This document shows, one piece after another, positions 11,905-62,285 of a stretch of 64,000 nucleotides of DNA (positions are counted from its first letter, which is position 1; the number at the start of each line of letters is the position of its first letter). Both the position numbers and the translations under genes were made by a program. Under the pieces are notes generated by a model. The model saw nothing but the letters and a program-made list of their open reading frames with translations, was not told the DNA's origin and searched no databases. Source of the stretch: Scyliorhinus canicula (Eukaryota); NCBI RefSeq assembly GCF_902713615.1, contig NC_052155.1, forward strand, positions 103,771,103 to 103,835,102. The letters are read 5' to 3'.

Positions 11905-12142
11905 CCATCAGAAGAACAAAGGAGAGAGTTGAAAGAGTTTCTTTTCACACAGAGGGTTATTGTTACTGAGAATGCTTTACCACAAAATGGTCATTCGTGG
12001 CAGAGAACATAATATCATTTAAAAGGGAATTGCAACAGGATTTGAAAAGGGAGAATATAAAAGGATGCAGAGAAAAGGCAGGAATGGGATTAGAGCTGGT
12101 TCCTCTGGTTGAGGGACTGGCATGACATTTCTATGATTTCTA
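11905..12142 (+). mobile_element. Old CR1 3' end fragment
   Basis: ttcttttcacacagagggtt (FFTQRV motif) and a ttctatgatttcta terminus. Confidence 0.6.
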
Positions 12143-12949
12143 AAGCCACTTAAGTGTCATGGCTAGTTGATTATATAAATCCCAATGAAACACTTTGAAA
12201 CTCTTTACCGGTAGTTTAAAATGTTACTATATACGTGAAAAAAGAACCAGATAGACTAATATAACAGTGGAAGCAATTTATTTTCCTGCATATATGTGGA
12301 GAATGGGATAGACGTCTGCCTTATGACAGCAACAGGGCGTCTGTTCAATTTGACTGGTTTGAACCTCATTTACATTGAATGGCTCTGCAAGCCCGAAACA
12401 CACTCCTTACAGGTAGCTCTCTCTGTTCCCGGGTTTCGTATAATCACATTCTTCATGGCCTAAAGCTAAGATGTTCAATGGACATGCTGCAGGGAGAATT
12501 CAGATCCCCTCACCCAGTGGCAACAAGACAGTAGACCAGCATTGAATGGTCCAGTTGTAGAGTTGCTAATCCGGACAATTCAAACAGTGAAGCCTGAGTT
12601 CAAAGCAAGGTTTGTGGGCATTATCTTTTCTCTTTCTACTTTACTCACCCTCATGCACTCACTCTACATGAAAACCTGGGGATGCACTGTGCAGTCACTC
12701 ATCTGCTACTGCATCCCTTCGCTGTTGCTAATCTTGTCTCTTTGACCTTCTTATTGGTCCTTCAGATGAGTCAGGTCCAGCCACCGCCCAGACTAAAATG
12801 GAGAACCTTTCTAAAGAAACCTCTTCATTCACTGTCACACTTCCAAGCACCAACACAGAATCTGACATCAACAATGAGTGAGAGGAATCTGCTCGGGGTG
12901 ATTCACTGAGCACAAATGAGTAGGGCCAGTGCAATGGAGCAAGCAGCTC

Positions 12950-13244
12950 TGTCATAATCCACACAGGATTTACAAAGTGGCAATGATTAAATTCCCTGTG
13001 AGCCTCGCTGAATGTGAACTACCCCATTAGAGGGGGGGGGGGGGGGGGGGGGGGAGAGGGGGGGGGGGGGGTGGAACCCTAAACTATGGATAGCTGACCT
13101 TCTGTATGAAGTCGGCCAGTTTGAGTACCGACATAGCGGAAAGACACAGCTGAGATCTGTTGTGCAATGTAAATAATAGTTATTGTAAATAAAACTTTAT
13201 TTCCTTCCACAACTCGGTGTGGACTCCCTTTGTGGTCTACTAAA
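12950..13244 (+). mobile_element. Small solo LTR
   Basis: Starts TGTCATAAT, contains AATAAA. 3' part actcggtgtggactc is shared with the LTR at 31935. TSD AGCTC/AACTC. Confidence 0.65.
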
Positions 13245-13504
13245 AACTCCAAATGACTCATTAAGGGCCAACTATGTCCTAGCTCTGCTGAAGATGATAA
13301 TCTGCAGACTTTAGGGACACAGCCATTAAAATCTTTTTAAATGATTTATGTCCACCAAGAATTGCCCAAATCATTGAACTGTCTGTCAGGGAGCTTCGAC
13401 AACATGTCTGGAGATTATGGAAGCGTCCACTTCTGACTTGTGTGAAGTCCTCTTGCATGGCACCGAAGATGCGGTCAGTCAGAAAACATGTAGTCATTTC
13501 ACTA

Positions 13505-14235
13505 GATGCTGCAATTCTTTTCCCAAAATTGTGCAGAGTGTTGGATCAGGCGAGAAAAGCTGTGTGAAAATTGCTGGCTTCACAGCCACCTTTCCTCACC
13601 TGATTAAACGGCACTATGTGCATTTTCAGCCGGCTGAAAGGGCAGGGCCTAAACACGACGGCAATGCCAGGAATCTAGAATAAGGGCGCCCCCATCTCAA
13701 ATTTAAGCCTAAGGACCGCCCCCCCCCATGGACATCGGGACACCCCCACGATGGATAATATGAATGCCCTCCCCCCCACATGCTGATAGGGAACACCTCC
13801 CAATGGAGGGGGGTAACCCCCCTGCCAGTGCCCATGCCAGTGCCCCATACCAGTACACCTTACCAGTGCCCCCAGGCATTGCCTCCTGGCAGTGTTCAGG
13901 GGGCACTTTCAGGATGCTAGGGTGAAATGCAAAGGGAAGTCCCTCAACCCCCGGGGCCTGCAGGCACTTCTCCACCCCTGGTGTGGTCATCACGACTGGT
14001 TTACATCCTTGAAAACTAGTAGTGATTCACGTCAGCATGATGTCATGCCTCTGGGGTGGAGGAAGAGACATCATGGGAGGACATTGCGGCTTCAAGCCCA
14101 GTAATCAGATTATAATTTATTTGAATTCATGGAAATCAGATTAACGCCCTTGCTGGACATGAACATGATTTTGTCACTGCAAGGAAGACCTCAAATTCAG
14201 ATCTTGCCAGCGCAAAATCCTGTTTGTGACCGCTG
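13505..14235. mobile_element. Decayed Harbinger-type MITE
   Basis: GTGCCC/GGCAC-rich core and subterminal sequence resemble other MITEs in the window. TIRs degraded. Confidence 0.5.
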
Positions 14236-15647
14236 GTCATTATGGAATTTGAACCCGTGGTTAACGGGGCTGCTCGGTTACGGCCAATGACTTTTGTTGG
14301 ATTGCAGAGGTCTTTGTCATCAAACACTTGCTACTGCATTTCAGAGCGTCTTCAAAGCATTTTCCTGATTCTCTTCTGGAATGTCGACCATTTCAGTGTT
14401 AAAAAACAGGATCTAGAGGGTGAGAACTCTTCAACCTTCCATGCAAAATATCCATAACATTGAAGTTGATTTTTCAGTCGTTTTGCATTTGTCCAAGTTG
14501 GGTACAGATCTATTTGCAGGAATTGACTAAAATTGTAAGTCAGTTTCCCTAAAGAGGAGCAGTCTCATTGCGTACAATTCCTCATAAAACTACAAGCCCA
14601 AGGCCTACAAACTGTTGGGAAGAGTAAGGGTTCTCAAGAGTACTAACCCTTGTGCCCCACACAGCTAAAGCTTGGTTTGTTCCATTTTCCTCTTCTTGCT
14701 CTTCCTCCTTATTGTGTAGATGTTTAACAGTCACTCCAAATATTTCAACATCGCCAAAGTAGCAAAACGGACACGATATGTTACAAGCAAAATGCCTTTG
14801 AATCTTTCTAGCATTTTACCTGAGAGTTGCTGGTGCGAATTCCAACAAAGATCTCTGCAAATAGCTGTAATCTGACCAGTGCCGCCCATTGCTTGTAGAC
14901 AGGTTGAAGAACTGGTGGTAGCAAGGTGGATTGAGGTGAAAATGGGGTCAACATGTTAACTGTATTATCTGTCCTTAATTTGCATGTATTAATGTGGCTG
15001 TCAGCCTAAATTGTAGCCCTCCCGAAAATCAGTATGTTGGCAGGTTAATCCTCCATGTGATTATCATCTTGATGCTGTCCCGCATTTAGGCATAAATGGG
15101 GAAGAGTGACATGAAAATTGGCCTGGTGAGTCTTGCATCTGCCTTCGCACATTAACGTATAGTAAGGAAACAATATGTTTCTTTTATCTAATTGTTACAG
15201 CATGGTTATTGTCATATAGGATTTCAGCACTTCTTTTCTATGTGGGATGAATGAGTGAAAGTAACGCATACAGCCAAAAGTTATTGACGCAAATGGAAGA
15301 ATATTTAGAACAGCTGAAAATAAAAACCATTAGTGCCAATCTTTCACTAATATTTTTGAAGCAATTAGTGTTTGCATATAAAAATAAGGTCACTCTCAGG
15401 TGTGCTGCATAGAATGGGAGAAACACTTATGAATCTTTTTTTCACACAGCAGTTAGCAAAAATAAATTGCAACAGCCCAAACAGAATATCAGAGCATAGG
15501 GTACTTCAAAGTGCACAAATAATAATCACTTTGAAGGGTACATCGACTGAAGTTTTCTGGCAGCTTTATTTTTGTTTACAAAGTTGAGTTTCATATTTGG
15601 TCAAATATATTTATATCTTCTCTGAAGGGCAAAACTTCTGACACAAT

Positions 15648-16414
15648 GGGCGCGATTCAGTGGTCCTGTTGCTCCTGGCGCGTATCCGGGCGCAACAAGT
15701 GAAGCGTACACGAGCCCCAAATCAGGTCTGCGCAGGGCCGAACGCAAGTCACTCGACTCATTTCGTCCAGTGCAATCTGGATCTCGCCTTTACGACCTTA
15801 TGGCACATTTAAATACCCGGACGCCAGATTAGCCCGGCGCCCAGGACTCACTGGCTGCGCCTGGGAGACCTCATCAGGACACTGTTTAGTACTGGTACAC
15901 ACAAACGTGTAACAGCCCTGAGGATGGTCTCCCAGGCCAATGGAGATCCAGGATGGTCAGGGACAGGGAAGAGTGACACACTGGCACTCCTCCTGGCACC
16001 TGGGCACTGCCAGCCTGGCATTCTCACAGTGCCATCTGTGCCAGGGTGTCTATGTAGCACTGCCTTGGTGGATAGAATCTCCCCAAGGCCAATAAAAATG
16101 GCAAAGTGCTATTGGATAGCAGGATGTTTCTTGGCGCTGTAGCCAATGAGAAACACCTGCTATTGGATAGCAGGATGTTTCTTGGCGCTGTAGCCAATGA
16201 GAAACACCTGCTATTGGATAGCAGGATGTTTCTTGGCGCTGTAGCCAATGAGAAACACCTGCTATTGGATAGCAGGATGTTTCTTGGCGCTGTAGCCAAT
16301 GAGAAACACCTGCTATTGGATAGCAGGATGTTTCTTGGCGCTGTAGCCAATGAGAAACACCCCGCTAAACCCACTGTCCAGCGGACATGAACCTGAGCCC
16401 ACTGAATTGCGCCC
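15648..16414. mobile_element. Complete Harbinger-type MITE, 16-bp TIRs, AAT TSD
   Basis: GGGCGCGATTCAGTGG ... CCACTGAATTGCGCCC (15/16 match), with AAT on both sides. Confidence 0.9.
16107..16361. repeat. Minisatellite: 5 identical 51-bp hairpin units
   Basis: Unit TGCTATTGGATAGCAGGATGTTTCTTGGCGCTGTAGCCAATGAGAAACACC repeated five times with no spacers. Confidence 0.97.
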
Positions 16415-17276
16415 AATGCCCATATGTGCAAATGTCTCCTTGGCAGTGTTACCATATGATCTCCATATTATGTGCAGAAATGTAACTGTTGGGAGAACTT
16501 ATACTTCCTGAAGCATGAATACCTATATTAGGATATCTGGCAAAATGTCTCGTGCTCATTCACGTCCCAGTACAGTTTCTGCATTTGTTTCTTAGTCCAG
16601 TAACTGCCAGGGTCAGAATCATTCTCATTTACACATGCCTTTGGCTGCTCTTACGTGATCAAATAGACGAGAAAAGATGAGGCCGCAGAGAGCTGACTGC
16701 TGCCAAATAGTTTAATTGACTCTTTGATCCCTTTCCAAGTGGACAACCCACAAAAGACTATTATAACCATTGCAGATAACTGAGTTGAATGGATGTTGTG
16801 CAATATTAGTAACAATGCAAGACCAAACATAAGTAGGTTAATACATTCATTAAAATAGCTGATAATTAGAATTTTATTTAATCTGTTAATGTATTGCTAC
16901 TAATATTGTGCAGCGAACTTTCAGCCCAATACCTTTTGTTCTGAGCATTCATGTTCAGTGGTTGATTGTTATATTAATCAGCAGTTTACACAACCAGCAG
17001 TTGGGCCTAATTGTTGTTGCCCGTCCTGTTGGACATTATTTGAAGGGCATTTTTGATGCTGGCAAGAGCGAAAAATGATGGAAAAATAGATCGGGTGGGG
17101 TGGATAATGGTGGCTGATCCACAACTGTCACCAGCATGCTGAAGATGCACTTCAGGTACCTAGACAGATCTGAAGGTGCCCTTCAGACGTACTGGCCATG
17201 ATGTTCAGAATGATTCAGATTTGCAGCGCTCTGTGTAACTATGTTCAGCAGCAAGTGTCATGTGAGAGTACCCTTT

Positions 17277-17760
17277 GTGAGGGATAGAAACTGGGGACAT
17301 GAGAAATACTCAAGTGGTAATGGTAAAGGTAAAGGGGATTTGATGGGAGATAATAAGGAGAGTATACCTCAGAATTAAAAATAAATCCAGGAGGGTGGAA
17401 AAGAAATTAAAAGTTTCAAATGTTTCCACTGTAATAAACTAAGCCATGCAAAGTCACAGTGTTGGTGGTTGAAGAAAAGCACTGGGAAGGCTGATGCGGT
17501 AAAACAGGATAAGACAGTGGGGTCTGTTAAAGTGGTAAAGGAAAGCCCAAGTGAAGTGAAGGAAGTGCAAAAGATTGTACAGCCTGATCAAGAGGTGATT
17601 GAGAAGAAGGTGCCAGATCTCTTTAAATAATTTACTTGTGTGGGTAAAGTTTAATCAGGTGTATCAGAAGGAGCAGGTAAAGAAATCACAATGTTAAGAG
17701 ATACGGGAGCTAGTCAATCTTTAATGGCACGAGATGAGTAGTTATGTAGTTTGGGAAGAA
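17277..17760 (+). pseudogene. gag C-terminus (CCHC zinc knuckle) and aspartic protease
   Basis: CFHCNKLSHAKSQC (CX2CX4HX4C) at about 17421 and LRDTGASQSL at about 17694. Confidence 0.85.
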
Positions 17761-18288
17761 TGTTGCCAGAAAAGGTGGTAATATGTGGAATTCGGGGTGA
17801 GAGCAGTAGTGTTCCATTATATAAGGTAAGGTTGGAAAGTCCGGTGAAGAGTGAAGTGGTAATAGGAGTAATAGAGAAACTATCTTGTCCAGGAATACAG
17901 TTTATCTTGGATAATGATATAGCTGGATCGCAAGTGGGAGTGATGCCTACTGTGGTTGATAAGCCAGAGGAAAATCAGACAACTGAAGTGTTGAAGGACG
18001 AATATCCTGGGATTTTTCCGGATTGTGTAGTAACAAGTTTGCAAATTCACAGGTTAAGACCAGAGAAGAAATCAAAGAGTAAAGATGACGTTGAAGTGCA
18101 ATTGTCAGAAACGATTTTTGATCAGATGGCTGAAAAAGAACAAGAACAGGCGGAGGAGCAGGCGGATATTTTTAGTTCAGGAAAACTGGCGGAGTTACAA
18201 CAAAAAGATGAATAAATAAAATGGATGTATCAGAAAGTATACACGGAAGAGGAATCTGAGTGTATACCAGAGTGTTATTACCGTAAAA

Positions 18289-21745: not shown

Positions 21746-21975
21746 AACAATCTCCCATTGGCTCCCATCTATTCATGCCTTACTATTCATCATTACTGAT
21801 GAAAACATCTGGATGTCAGTGAATGTGCAACTGTACTCATCCGTCCTGATCTGTTTAGGTCATTAAAGTTATTTTCTGCATCGAATCGAGGAGCATGGTT
21901 CCACAGTCCTGTTGCTAAACTCCTCTCTAATGTCCAACCATGTCTTCTTTGTCTCAGTAACTGACTTTTCCCTCC

Positions 21976-24859
21976 TTTTTTTGAAGAAATTCATTGACGG
22001 GATGTGAGCGCTGCTGGTCAGGCCAGCATTTATTGCCCATCCGTAGTTCGTGTTCAAGAAGTTGGTAGTCAGCTACCTTTGTGAACAGTTGCAGTCCCTA
22101 AAATGCAGGTACACCCACAGCGCTGTGAGGGACGAAGTTCCAGGATTTTCACCCAGCGACAGTGAAGGAACGGCAAGAAATTTCAAAGTCATGGTGGTGA
22201 TTGACTTGGAGGGAAACCTCCAGGTTGTGGGGTTTCCAGGTATCTACTGCTCTTGTCCTTTTAGATGGTAGTGGTCATGGGTTTGGAAGGTGCTGCCTGA
22301 GGAACCTTGGTGAGTTCCTGCAATGCATCTTGTAGATGGTACACACGGCTGCCACTGTTCATCGGTGGTGGAAGGATTGAATGTTTGTGGAAGAGGGAGC
22401 AATCAAGTGGGCTGGTGTTGAGCTTCTTGAGTATTGTTGGAGTTGCATTCATCCAGGCAAGTGGAGAGTATTCTATTACACTCCTGACTTGTGCCTGTAG
22501 ATGGTAGACAGGTTTTGCGGGGGTCGTGAGGTGAGTTACTCGTCATAGGATTCCTAGCCTTTGGCCTGCACTGGTCGCCACAGGAGGAACTCCTGCAGTG
22601 ATGTCCTGGAGCTCATATGATTGACCTCCAATAACCACAACTATCTTCCATTGTGCCAGGTATGACTCCAACCAGCTGAGAGTTTTCCCCCCGATTCCCA
22701 TTGACTCCAGTTTACCTAGGGCTCCTTGGTGTCATACACGGTCAAATGCTGCCTTGATGTAAAGGGCAGTCACTCTCACTTCACCATTGGTATTCAGTTC
22801 TTTTGTCCATATTTGAACCAAGGCTGTAATGAGGTCAGGAGCTGAGTACCTTGGGTGGAAACCAAACTGAGCGTCTGTGAGCAGGTTATTGCTGAGTACT
22901 CACTGTTTGATAGCACTGTTGATGATTCCTTCCATCATTTTGCTGATGATGGAGAGTAGACTGATAGGGTGGTAATTGGCTGGGTTGGATTTGTCCTTTT
23001 TCTTGTGTACAGGACACACCTGGGCAATTTGCCACATTGCCGGGTAGGTGCCAGTGTTGTAGCTGTACTGGAACAGCTTGGCTAGGGATGCGGCAAGTTC
23101 TGGAGCACAAGTCTTCAGTACTATTGCCAGAATATTGTCAGTGCCCATAGTCTCTGTCATATCCAGTGCCTTCAGCTGTTTCTTGATATCATGTGGAGTG
23201 AATCGTGCTGTGATGCAGGGGACCTCCGGAGGAGATGAGATGGATCATCCACTCAGCATTCAAGGCTGAAGATGGTTACGAATACCTCAGCCTTGCCTTT
23301 TGCACAGATGTGCTGGACTCCTCCATCCTTGTAGATGGGGATATTTATGGAACCTCCTCCTCCTGTAAGTTGTTTAATTGTCCATCACCATTCACGGCAG
23401 GATGTGGCAGGACTGCTGAGCTTAGATCTGATGTGTTCATTGTGGAATCGCTTAACCTGGTCTATTACTTGCTGCTTATGCTGTTTGCCACACAACTAGC
23501 CCTGTGCAGCAGCATCACAAGGTTGACATCGCATTTTTAGGTATGCTGGGCGTTGTTCCTGGCATGCCCTTCGGCACTTTTCATTGAACCAGGTTGATCT
23601 CCAGGCTTGGTGTAATGGTAGGATGCAGGATATGCTGGGCCATGAGGTTGCAGATTGTGGTTGAGTATAATTCTCTGCTGCTGATCGCCCACAGTGTCTC
23701 ATGGATGCCCAGTCTTGAGTTGCTAGATCTGTTCGAAATCTATCCCATTTAGCGCGGTGGAAGTGCCACACAACATGATGGAGGCCTCAATGTGAAGACG
23801 GGGCTTTGTCTTCACAATGACTGTGCGGTGGTCACTTCTACCGAAACTGTCATGGACAGATGCATCTGTAGCAGGTAGCTTGGTGAGGATGTGGTCAAGT
23901 ATGGTTTTCCCCTCTTGTTGGTTCCCTCACCACCTGCTGCAGTCCCAGTTTAGCAGCTATTTCCTTTAGGACCAGGCTAGCTTGGTCTGTAGTGGCACTA
24001 CTGAGCCACTCTTGGTGATGGACATTGAAGTATCCTACCCAGAGTATATTCTGAAACCTTGCCACCCTCAGTGCTTCCTTCAAGTGGTGTTCAACATGGT
24101 AGAGTACTGATTCATCAGCTGATGGTGGCCAGTGCGTGGTAATCAGCAGGAGGTTTCCTTGCCCATGTTTTAACTTGAATCCATGAGACTTCATGGGGTC
24201 CAGAGTCGATGTTGAGGACTCCCAGGGCAACTACCTCCCAACTGTATGCCACTGTGCCTCCACCTCTGCTGGGTCTGTCCTGCCAGTGAGACAGGACATA
24301 CTCAGGGATAGTGATAGAGGTGTATGGGACATTGTCTGTCAGGTATGGTTCTGTGAGCATGATTATGTCAGGCTGTTGCTTGACTAGTCCATGAGATAGC
24401 TCTCCCAACTTTGGCACAAGCCTCCTGATGTTAGTAAGGAGGACTTTGTAGGGTCGACAGGGCTGGGTTTGCCCTTATCGTTTGTGGTGCCTGGGTCGAT
24501 GCTGGTGGTCCATCCAGTTTCATTCCTTGTACGTAGCAGATAAATACAACTCAATGGCTTGCTAGGCCATTTCGGAAGGGCATTTAAGAGTCAACCGCAT
24601 TGCTGTGGGTCTGGAGTCACATGTAGGCCAGACCAGGCAAGGATGGCAGATTTTATTCCCGAAAAGGAAATTAGTGAACAAGGTGGGTTTTTACAACAAT
24701 CAAAAATGGTTTCATGGTCATCATTAGACTTTTAATTCCAGATATTTTATTGAGCTTTTAAATTCCACTACCTGCCGTGGTGGGATTCAAACCGAGCTCC
24801 CCACCCTGGTTTTCTGGATTACTAGTCAAGCGATATTGCCACTACACCATCGCCTCTCC
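21976..24859 (-). mobile_element. CR1-superfamily (L2/Crack-like) single-ORF LINE with tRNA head + Deu-domain 5' end
   Basis: EN motifs (QQPDIIMLTEPYL, DRPSRGGG, VGYFNVHHQEWL, EPTRG) and RT motifs (APELAASLAKLF, NPANYHPISLLS). 3' tail gatgggcaataaatgctggcc..catccc. Positions 24550-24859 are a SINE head plus Deu domain. Internal deletion near 22585. Confidence 0.88.
24783..24849 (-). promoter_or_regulatory. Pol III type-2 internal promoter (box A / box B) at the LINE 5' end
   Basis: Box A TGGTGTAGTGG (24849-24839) and box B GGTTTGAATCC (24793-24783). Confidence 0.7.
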
Positions 24860-25105
24860 TGGGGTGTGTGATCTTTATCTCTCGCTGAGTCCGTTACTAT
24901 ACCCAGCAGCAGGTTAAGGGAGGCATCAGTAGAAAAAGCGGCAGACTTTGCTTATCTGGACTCCATTCTGCCACTTCCAGGTATCTGACAATATTCTTCA
25001 ATTTGCATGTTTGGATTAAATACGAGACTGGAGAACACAGAAAGTGGGTCCACGTCCCATCTGCTGCTACTGATTGTGTAGGAAGCCCAAAAGTAAAGTG
25101 CTAAT

Positions 25106-34948: not shown

Positions 34949-35295
34949 ATCATAGAATTTACAGTGCAGAAGGAGGCCATTCGGCCCATCGAGTCTGCAC
35001 CAGCTCTTGGAAAGAGCACCCTACCCAAGGTCAACACCTCCACCATATCCCCATAACCCAGTAACCCCACCCAACACGGAGGGCAATTTTGGACACGAAG
35101 GGCAGTTTATCATGGCCAATCCACCTAACCTGCACTTCTTTGGACTGTGGGAGGAAACCGGAGCACCCGGAGGAAACCCAGGCACACACAGGGAGGATGT
35201 ACAGACTCCGCACAGACAGTGACCCAAGCCGGAATCAAACCTGGGACCCTGGAGCTGTGAAGCAATTGTGCTATCCCCAATGCTACCATGCTGCC
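34949..35295 (-). mobile_element. Full HE1-like V-SINE
   Basis: Head, V-domain and CR1-type tail; near-identical to 44211 and 58483. Confidence 0.93.
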
Positions 35296-35296
35296 A

Positions 35297-35485
35297 AATA
35301 GATGGATTCTTATGACAATTGGCAATGTTTTTTATGGTCATCATCAAACTTGTAATTCCACATTTTTTACTGAATTCAAATCTCACCATCTGCCATGGTG
35401 GGATTCGAACCCAGGACCTCAGAGCATTAGGCTGGGTCTCTGGATTACTAGTCCACTGGCAATACCACTACACCAACACCTCCCC
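35297..35485 (-). mobile_element. 5' half of a Deu-domain (SacSINE1-like) SINE
   Basis: Homologous to 24680-24859 (box A/B, ctagtaatccag, gaatttgaattca). Confidence 0.8.
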
Positions 35486-35711
35486 TGATTATTAAGTACA
35501 TGCTAACTTGAATTTTTAGTTTCTTTTAGTTTTCTCATAATTATAAGATAGCAGACACAACAGACGGAATCTTGTGCTGCTTCGAGGAGTGGGAAGCAAA
35601 GCAGGTAGGAGCAGGAGACCAAAAAAACAACTTACTGACGGTGAGACAAACCTTTACAATTAAGTTCAGGGACATTTGAAGACATGTCGAGCTTCCCATC
35701 GGCAAGTGCAT

Positions 35712-39896: not shown

Positions 39897-40258
39897 GGAA
39901 ATGGTGCTATAGTGGTAACGTTACCGGACTTGTATTCCAGAGGCCCTGGCAATGCTCTGGGGACACGGTAGCTGGTGGAATTTAAATTCAATTGATAAAA
40001 TCTGGAATTGAAAGCTAGTCTCAGTAAAGATGACTATGATTGCTGTAAAAATCCACCTGATTCACTAACATCCTTCAGGGAAGGATAACTACCTTGCTTA
40101 CCTGATCTGGTCAACATACGGCACCACATCTTTCGCAATGTGGTTCACTCTTACCTGCCCTATGAAATGGCCCAGCAACATTAGTTCAAGGGCATTAAGG
40201 ATGGCGACAAATGCATGTCTTGCCAGTGACGCCTACATCCCAAGAAATAATAAATAAC
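39897..40258 (+). mobile_element. Complete Deu-domain SINE (SacSINE1-like)
   Basis: tRNA head, Deu domain (gaatttaaattca..ttcactaacatccttcagggaagg..gcaatgtggttcactctt..gaaatggcc) and tail shared with the LINE 3' end at 21976. Confidence 0.85.
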
Positions 40259-41264: not shown

Positions 41265-42700
41265 ATCAACTTTGACTTAAACATTCACTTCCTTCCACAT
41301 CAACACAGTGTTGTTTGCATCATCTACAAGATGCCCTGTAGAAACTCACCATGGCTCCTTCGATAGCACTTTCCAAACCCATGGCCACCACCACTCAGAA
41401 CGACAAGGGCAGAAAATGTTCGGGGACAAGACGAGGTTTGGAAGGTGCTGTCGAAGGAGGCTTGCTGAGTTGCTGCAGTGTATCTTCCATAATGTATAGA
41501 CTGCTGCCACCATGCATTAGTAGTGGAGGGTGTGAAGATTTAAAGTGGTGGATGAGGGGCCAATCCAGTGGGCTACTTTGTCCTGTGTGGTGCCCAGTTT
41601 CTTGAGTGTTGTTGGAGCTGCACTCATGCAGACAACCCTAGAGTATTCCATCACACTCCTGGCGTGTGCCTTGTAATTGGTGGGCAGGCTTTGGGGAGTG
41701 AGGAAATAGGTTATTTGCCTCAGCATTCTCAGCCTCTGACCTGCTTTTGTAGCCACCATATTTATTTGGCTAGTCCACTTCAATTTCTGGTCCATGGTGA
41801 CCTCCACGAGGTTGATGGTGGTGATTTAAGTATGCTAATGCCATTGAACGTCAAGGAAATATAGTGAGATTCTCTCTTGTTGGAGCTGGTTATTGCCTGG
41901 CACTTGGCCCAAATATTACGTGCCACTTATCAGTTCAATCCTAGACATTATCCAGGTCTTCCTGCACATGGACATGAACTGCTTCATATCGGAGTTGCAA
42001 ATGGTACTGACCATTGTGCAATTATCAGCGAACATCACTTCTGACCTTATGTTGGAAGGAAGGTGTGGGCAGCACAGTGGCGCAGTGGGTTAGCCCTGAT
42101 GCCTCACGGCACCGAGGTCCCAGGTTCGATCCTGGCTCTGGGTCACTGTCCATGTGGAGTTTGCACATTCTCCCAGTGTCTGTGTGGGTTTCGCCCCCAC
42201 AACCAAAAGATGTGCAGGCTAGGTGGATTGGCCACACTAAATTGCCCCTTAATTGAAAAAAAAAAATGAATTGGATACTCTATATTTTTTAATTTTGTTT
42301 TAAATGTTGGAAGGAAGGTCATTAATGAATCAGCTGAAAATGGTTGGGCGTAGGACACTAGCCTGAGAAATTCCTGCAGAGATGTCCTGGGCCGGAGATG
42401 GTTGGTTCCAACAGCTACAAACATCTTCCTTTGTGCTAGGTATGACTCCAACCAGGGGAGAGTTTCTCCCTGATTCCCATTGACTTCAGTTTTGCTAAAT
42501 ACATCACCTGCTGTTCCTTCATTGTTGCTGGGACAAAATCCTGGAATTCCATCCTTAACAGCACTGTGTGGATGTACCTACACAAGATGGACGGCAGAAG
42601 TTCAAGAAGGCCATTAACTTCTCCAGAGAAATTAGGGATAAGTGGTAAATCCTGGCCCTGCCAGTAGCACCCACATCTCATGAACAAATAATTTTTAAAA
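41265..42700. mobile_element. Two nested opposite-strand copies of the L2/Crack-like LINE 3' region
   Basis: Plus copy at 41265-41427 and 42497-42700 (with tail). Minus copy at 41433-42495 (RT incl. FADN; KAHARSVMEYS). Confidence 0.8.
42065..42303 (+). mobile_element. Short-tail V-SINE with perfect 16-bp TSD
   Basis: ATGTTGGAAGGAAGGT at 42049-42064 and 42304-42319. Confidence 0.93.
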
Positions 42701-61261: not shown

Positions 61262-62285
61262 GTTTATTTCTTTTATTTTATTGTCAGCATCGCTGGCTGG
61301 CTCTAACTGCCCTCCATTTCAGAGAGCATTTGAGAGTCAACCACACGACAGTGAATCTAGAGTCACATGTAAACCAGACCAGGTAAGGATGGCAGATTTC
61401 CTTCCCTCAAGAATATTAGTGCACCAAAGAACAATATAGCACAGGAACAGGCCCTTCGGCCCTCCAAGCCTGCCCCGACCATGGTACCTGCTGAAACTAA
61501 AACCGCCTGCACTTACGGAGTCCGTATCCTTCCATTCCAAGCCTATTCATATATTTGTCTAGATGCTCCTTAAATGCCGCTATTGTACCTGCTCCCACCA
61601 ACTCTCCAGACAGCGCGTTCCATATATTTACCACCCTCTGTGTTAAAAAGGTGCCTCGCACATCTGTTCTAAACTTTTCCCCACACACTTTAAATCTATG
61701 TCCCCTAGAATCTGACTCTCCTACCCTAGGAAAGAGCATCTGACTATCCACTCTGTCCATGCCACTCATAATCTTGTAGACCTCTATCAGGTTGCCTCTC
61801 CACCTCCGTCATTCCAGTGAGAACAGACCGAGTTCATCTAACCTATCCTCACAGCTAATGCCCCCCATAACAGGCAACATCCTAGTAAACCGCTTCTGCA
61901 CTCTCTCCAAAGCATCCACATCCTTCTGCTGGTGTGGCGACCAGAATTGTATTCAATAATCCAAATGAGGCCTAACTAAGGTCCTGTACAGCTGCAACAT
62001 GACTTGCCAATTTTTGTATTCAATGCCCCGACCGATGAAGGCCAGCATGCCATATGCCTTCTTGACCACCTTATCCACAGGTGTTGCCACTTTCAGTGAT
62101 CGGTGGACATGCACGCCCAGATATCTCTGCCTGTCAGTACTCGCAAGAGTTTTACCAGATGGGATTTTAAAGATAATTATTTCATGGTCACCATTAGACT
62201 TTTAATTCCACATTTTTATTGAATTCAAATATCACCATGATGGGATTTGAACCCAGGTGACAATGCCACTACACCACTGCCTCCT
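61262..62285 (-). mobile_element. Deu-domain SINE split by a CR1 insertion
   Basis: 3' half at 61262-61427 and 5' half at 62155-62285. ACCARA appears duplicated at the junctions. Confidence 0.75.
61428..62154 (-). mobile_element. CR1 LINE 3' end
   Basis: SRGHRFKV..FRTDVRGTFLTQRVVNIWNAL..FKEHLDKYM, then a ggccgaagggcctgttcctgtgct tail. Confidence 0.92.

Follow-up and report, generated by a model that had tools for sequence, protein, structure and literature searches.

A decayed copy of an old shark LINE family that begins with a SINE front end

How tRNA heads, conserved bodies and LINE tails come together in SINEs is an old open question, and published models either add a head to a deleted LINE or add a LINE tail to a small RNA. 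A locus of Scyliorhinus canicula bears on this question. Within a stretch of 64,000 nucleotides (assembly GCF_902713615.1, contig NC_052155.1, positions 103,771,103 to 103,835,102; hereafter the window), an earlier note made from the sequence alone described, on the minus strand, a tRNA-derived SINE head and a Deu-type body fused to a single endonuclease-reverse transcriptase (RT) ORF, without ORF1 and without a SINE tail in between. The note inferred an autonomous retroposon using a SINE as its 5' UTR and promoter, that is, a protein-coding SINE. We then asked whether this fusion is real, whether it is unique to this locus, and what it indicates about the descent of the SINE and the LINE. The architecture seen in the earlier note was confirmed. 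Its interpretation was supported only in part: the fusion is a feature of a family, while promoter use by the SINE part and transcription by RNA polymerase III remain inferences.

We first read the minus strand of the locus, which begins with GGAGAGGCGATGGTGTAGTGG. Box A is TGGTGTAGTGG and box B is GGTTTGAATCC, lying 56 nt apart, start to start, at tRNA-like spacing (Table 1). The 16-mer around box B was matched exactly at this locus and with one to three mismatches at other SINE copies in the window (6 matches against 1.0 expected), and the copy at 35487 carries GGTTCGAATCC. The SINE body of about 230 nt aligned with three other SINE copies in the window, two of which are interrupted by nested insertions. 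Similarity to the free SINE at 39897 stopped near 24550, where the free SINE continues into a tail of about 65 nt, and this tail is homologous to the 3' end of the element itself. In the element, the SINE end is instead followed by about 30 nt, an ATG and a poorly conserved stretch, and LLTNIRRLVPKLGEL starts at 24441, about 110 nt after the SINE part. Neither an ORF1 nor a SINE tail lies between them, and there is no room for an ORF1. The free SINE copies are short and non-coding, as is usual for a tRNA-derived SINE, whereas the element runs on into about 2.5 kb of endonuclease-RT sequence.

Table 1. Coordinates of the element and of related copies within the window
Feature	Position	Strand	Basis and remarks
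tRNA-type SINE head	24775..24860	-	Sequence reading, motif search and alignment with the free SINE; small internal deletion compared with other copies
Box A	24849-24839	-	Within the head
Box B	24793-24783	-	Within the head
SINE body (called Deu-type in the earlier note)	24550..24774	-	blastn within the window; alignment with the free SINE; very high contig depth in two species
Short spacer	24524..24549	-	Copies vary by small insertions and deletions at 24529-24532; an ATG at 24570-24568, inside the SINE end, is used as the start by whale-shark gene models P0007 and P0162
Probable start codon and poorly conserved N-terminal stretch before LLTNI	24441..24523	-	ATG at 24523-24521; P0024 and P0010 start MKPDG and MKLGG at this ATG
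Apurinic-type endonuclease domain	23760..24440	-	Broken by stops and frameshifts; weak Pfam hits to Exo_endo_phos and Exo_endo_phos_2; tblastn; fragment homologues at 66-88% identity
N-terminal part of RT domain	22585..23202	-	tblastn; ends at a deletion of about 600 nt near 22584-22581, inferred from the second LINE copy
C-terminal part of the ORF and 3' region	22061..22581	-	blastn to the second LINE copy at 41756-41435; high contig depth
3' tail shared with the free SINE	21976..22060	-	Alignment with the free SINE; ends in a run of seven A (21982-21976)
Free SINE copy	39897..40258	+	Made of the 5' unit of the element plus its 3' tail
Other SINE copy	35487-35300		Interrupted by nested insertion
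Other SINE copy	62285-61270		Interrupted by nested insertion
Second LINE copy (RT and 3' part)	41435..42492	-	5'-truncated and interrupted

The coding homology was next examined. By tblastn with three full-length ORF2 proteins that carry Pfam Exo_endo_phos and RVT_1 (P0072, P0095 and P0115), residues 6-119 were placed on 24495-24118 (E 1e-11 to 1e-12) and residues 432-635 on 23202-22585 (E 1e-29 to 1e-14), collinear and on one strand. Pfam hits on the fragments were weak, Exo_endo_phos_2 giving E 8.6e-05, below the curated cut-off on a fragment. The single ORF of the earlier note is not open, however, as the reading frame is broken by many stops and frameshifts and the copy lacks about 600 nt of RT compared with the second copy. 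This copy is therefore dead. The tRNA ancestry of the head rests on the two boxes only, because ARAGORN found no tRNA and Rfam gave no tRNA match in the head of this copy or of a better-preserved one, except for a T-arm-sized hit at E 0.26 in another copy. The Deu assignment of the body remains a putative label of the earlier note, and a full-text literature search for the core sequence found nothing.

As a junction found only at this locus would have argued for chance adjacency, we next searched for other copies. A 2270-nt contig from a JGI metagenome (L002) carries a decayed head, the SINE body, a diverged but recognisable linker and the endonuclease start in the same order. The linker contains a 16-mer identical to that in the window, GGCAAACCCAGCCCTG. 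Identity to the window copy was 69% in the head, 75% in the body and 79% in the endonuclease start; similarity began at the canonical SINE 5' end, and the sequence before it was unrelated. Four gene-model fragments of the whale shark Rhincodon typus in EukProt also read from the SINE body into the endonuclease. P0018 aligned collinearly to 24687-24265 (E 1e-27), with a weak protein-level trace of the box B region (E 1.4); P0162 aligned to 24570-24169 (E 7e-46); P0001 has a SINE-body piece at 24664-24632 followed by the endonuclease; and P0007 begins MAQQATQLY, which is the SINE end read in frame. For P0007 and P0018 no DNA is on record. Only two copies, those of the window and of L002, show the tRNA-type head at the DNA level. 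In addition, contigs from public DNA runs of two shark species bridged the junction with 13-15% differences, indicating that they come from other copies: run X1 record 2 (24450-24573), run X7 record 19 (24504-24642) and run X7 record 20 (24507-24637). Free SINE copies appeared as joints from 24577 to 22042, skipping about 2534 nt, in many contigs of all four runs, in agreement with the alignments showing that the free SINE equals the two ends of the element.

No copy with a different 5' UTR or an ORF1 was seen. Among the other contigs examined, L001 reaches only 60 nt upstream of LLTNI, and L003 and L009 are 5'-truncated copies. Two scans of metagenome contigs, one with a 20-mer conserved in three copies and one with a junction-spanning pattern, found nothing. 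The abundance of the headed form should be taken with caution. The summed contig depth over the composite-specific stretch 24510-24542 was about 80-120 in the two runs of organism A (X1 and X5), where single-copy flanks are near 4, and 1600-2400 in organism B, where single-copy contigs are near 30. At the endonuclease start the organism A runs read about 12,000-18,000, and organism B fell by a similar or larger factor, so that the depth over the composite-specific stretch is about 1% of that at the endonuclease start. No target-site duplication flanks the element, as no shared k-mer of 6 or more was detected between the flanks, and single-event insertion of this copy is thus not shown directly.

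The nearest full-length ORF2 proteins in the libraries are distant, with about 30% identity in the RT, and sit on 4-kb transcript-like contigs, each with a coiled-coil ORF1 of 237-269 aa that overlaps the ORF2 start. Pfam analysis of these ORF1s gave only coiled-coil noise. Residues 8-16 of their ORF2 align at 24495-24486, indicating that the shark element keeps a complete ORF2 N-terminus and that the SINE unit sits where the 5' UTR plus ORF1 would be. No intact ORF of the family was found among 1.8 billion representative proteins, so its autonomy is inferred from domain content, and the family looks extinct in the data at hand. In one oligo-dT RNA run no read lay on 24510-24542 and the SINE core appeared on both strands, which is not evidence against past expression. 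Depletion of TTTT as a sign of polymerase III was not supported: the sense strand has 3 runs against 2.9 expected from dinucleotide shuffles, the LINE part has 1 against 1.7, and a distant ORF1-bearing relative (L008) is equally T-poor. The scarcity of TTTT is thus explained by base composition.

Taken together, we consider it likely that the stretch is a dead full-length copy of an old elasmobranch LINE family with one endonuclease-RT ORF and no ORF1, whose 5' UTR is a whole tRNA-type SINE front end and which was amplified as a unit. Its placement in the CR1/L2 group is tentative, being hinted at only by the literature label of the SINE tail (PMC3747384, PMC2746220) and by an automatic 'jockey'-type cluster name. 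What the sequences themselves establish is the fixed SINE-to-ORF2 junction in diverged copies from several sources, the coincidence of the 5' ends of both copies known at the DNA level with the SINE 5' end, and the 3' tail shared with the SINE. The origin and the mode of working are our inference. In this view, one ancestral fusion, likely by RT template switching or recombination, put a SINE RNA or DNA in front of a LINE that had lost its 5' UTR and ORF1, and the fusion then spread as a unit. Transcription would start at the first base of the SINE, with which the observed 5' ends fit, driven by promoter activity inside the SINE unit, although the present data do not single out the polymerase. 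The ORF2 protein would bind the 3' tail of its own RNA and copy it into the genome, and SINE RNAs carrying the same tail would be copied in trans. The term protein-coding SINE is one way to describe the element, but an ORF1-less LINE that took a SINE as its 5' UTR fits the data equally well.

Other explanations were weighed against this view. The reverse direction of descent concerns origin only, the architecture being the same: the headed LINE may have come first, and the SINE may have arisen from it by internal deletion, as a bipartite non-autonomous LINE in the sense of Okada and Hamada 1997 and Kojima 2018, its head and body being LINE 5' UTR. The free SINE is indeed made of the 5' and 3' ends of the element, SINE bodies derived from the 5' UTRs of RTE and Vingi LINEs are documented (Kojima 2018, PMC5786205), and a SINE subfamily lacking the 27-nt segment next to the junction exists, as seen from loose ends at 24578. 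On the other hand, the published cases lack a tRNA head on the LINE itself, and if the body is a true Deu domain, it is far older and more widespread than this LINE and is attached to different tails in other animals (PMC4824008), which would favour capture of a pre-existing SINE. We regard this reading as possible but rather unlikely.

It is also unlikely, though not excluded, that the SINE-headed form is a real but minor, short-lived side lineage of a main family with another 5' end, perhaps with an ORF1, as distant relatives do have an ORF1 and the depth falls about 100-fold between 24454 and 24510-24542 in all three DNA runs. This fall is gradual, however, and the window copy differs from the majority base at 24474, 24477 and 24484, which by itself clips alignments at the 80% threshold; moreover, contig depth is not a copy number. 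Every copy that shows sequence upstream of the start codon shows SINE (the window, L002, P0007, P0018, P0162, P0001 and the three bridging contigs), and no cluster of loose ends pointing to one alternative upstream sequence appeared among the listed rows. Repeated and independent formation by template switching from LINE RNA to SINE RNA, as in U6/L1 chimeras, is very unlikely. Template switching by LINE reverse transcriptases is known (cited in PMC4824008 and in bioRxiv 10.1101/2022.11.04.512097), but independent switches would give different junction points, whereas the same SINE end, linker and start codon recur here, and the SINE part lacks its 3' tail, where a switch onto SINE RNA would be expected to begin. 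Chance adjacency, nested insertion or local deletion at this one locus could be suggested from the lack of a target-site duplication and from the nested insertions in other SINE copies of the window, but is hardly tenable, being contradicted by L002 and the whale-shark fragments; in addition, no SINE remainder follows the 3' end at 21975 and beyond.

The free SINE fits the published description of shark SacSINE1, one of the tRNA-headed DeuSINEs, with a tRNA-type head, a long conserved body and a LINE-derived tail, and the length of the free copies is compatible with the published 463 bp (Nishihara 2006, as cited in PMC4824008, PMC2746220 and PMC3747384). That SINE is non-coding, and its partner LINE is given only as 'CR1-4_DR-like' or 'L2 clade'. 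The L2 LINEs ZfL2-2 and UnaL2 also have a single endonuclease-RT ORF without ORF1 and belong to the stringent type with a 3' tail shared with a tRNA-derived SINE (PMC3880073, PMC1636434, PMC4176376), and ZfL2-2 retrotransposes in HeLa cells without ORF1p (PMC3880073). In those pairs only the 3' tail is reported as shared, whereas here the 5' 300 nt including the A and B boxes are shared too. In Bov-B, Bov-A, Bov-tA and other bipartite derivatives, the short element likewise contains both the 5' and the 3' part of its LINE, but the tRNA head sits only on the SINE and is thought to have been added to a deleted LINE, and the clades reported are RTE and Vingi (PMC5786205). Here the LINE itself carries the head and is tentatively of the CR1/L2 group. 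Acquisition of an unrelated new 5' end by a LINE body, for which template switching is a plausible route, is documented for L1 lineages and for SolRTE of Nicotiana (bioRxiv 10.1101/2022.11.04.512097), and U6/L1-type chimeras are comparable. In the present case the acquired 5' end is a complete SINE unit with a polymerase III-type internal promoter, as judged from the boxes, and the chimera multiplied with a fixed junction. Literature searches on LINEs with a SINE or tRNA 5' end, on shark transposable elements and on the core sequence as text found no description of such an element, although Repbase and Dfam lay outside these searches.

A LINE that itself carries the whole SINE front end links the two element classes at both ends and makes the direction of descent testable in shark genomes. 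It also raises the question whether an internal polymerase III-type promoter, which travels with every full-length copy, can serve a coding element. The replacement of ORF1 by a non-coding unit adds a natural case to the evidence that ORF2-only elements of the L2 type can multiply. A more far-reaching reading, unlikely but not excluded, is that the family was a protein-coding retrotransposon started by RNA polymerase III from its own tRNA-type internal promoter, and that the very abundant shark SINE is simply its internally deleted form. If so, a SINE head and body can be the native 5' end of an autonomous element, which would give a direct route for the birth of SINEs and for the spread of conserved SINE bodies.

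With respect to the 3' tail, a hairpin was predicted, but the fold was not significant on single sequences, with z-scores of only −1.3 and −0.4. HER1 was also considered as the identity of this LINE and rejected. HE1, the other classic shark SINE, is a V-SINE (PMC4824008) and corresponds to a different element in the window, and this HE1-like copy has a different tail, which matches another LINE fragment.

Two of the copies of the SINE studied here were found to be interrupted by other elements. One copy has received an insertion of an HE1-like V-SINE, which consists of a tRNA head, a GGGTTTCCTCCGGGTGCTCCGGTTTCC core and a CR1-type tail (GGGCCGAATGGCCTCCTTCTGCACTGTAAATTCTATGA), and its tail differs from that of the LINE under study. 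In the other copy, a 3' fragment of another CR1-like LINE is nested. This fragment ends with the tail type of the V-SINE and is a candidate for the published HER1. Near the second copy of the LINE under study (42492-41435, minus strand), two pieces of the LINE 3' region were observed in the opposite orientation, and that copy is itself interrupted near 42030-42260. The locus looks rearranged or multiply nested.

At the loose ends near the end of the SINE part, many SINE contigs and RNA reads pass from ...CTGCCC directly into the tail (CCTCAAGGGCAATTAGGGATGGGCAATAAA), skipping the 27-nt segment TGAAATGGCCTAGCAAGCCACTCAGTT that is shared by the composite and the free SINE at 39897. This is a second SINE subfamily, and may help to order the events. 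An ATG inside the SINE end is used as the start codon by the whale-shark gene models P0007 and P0162, and there it is in frame with the endonuclease. In the window copy, however, the third codon is TAG, and either this ATG or the one at 24523 may be the true start of the ORF.

Positions of the features (window coordinates unless a contig is named)
Feature	Position	Strand	Location
HE1-like V-SINE	34950-35300	minus	inside SINE copy 35487-35300
3' fragment of another CR1-like LINE	61440-62150	minus	inside SINE copy 62285-61270
Loose ends of SINE contigs and RNA reads	24578		
ATG inside the SINE end	24568-24570	minus	
Piece of the LINE 3' region	41313-41412	plus	flanking the second LINE copy
Piece of the LINE 3' region	42509-42610	plus	flanking the second LINE copy
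Internal deletion of the independent composite copy	1800-1900 of L002		

The independent composite copy on the metagenome contig L002 has its own large internal deletion, joining the endonuclease region to a point that matches window position about 23370. The Logan contigs L004/L005, L006/L007 and L008 are intact, transcript-like LINEs of about 4 kb from other organisms, each with a coiled-coil ORF1 overlapping an ORF2 of about 900 aa, and are distant relatives of the shark element.
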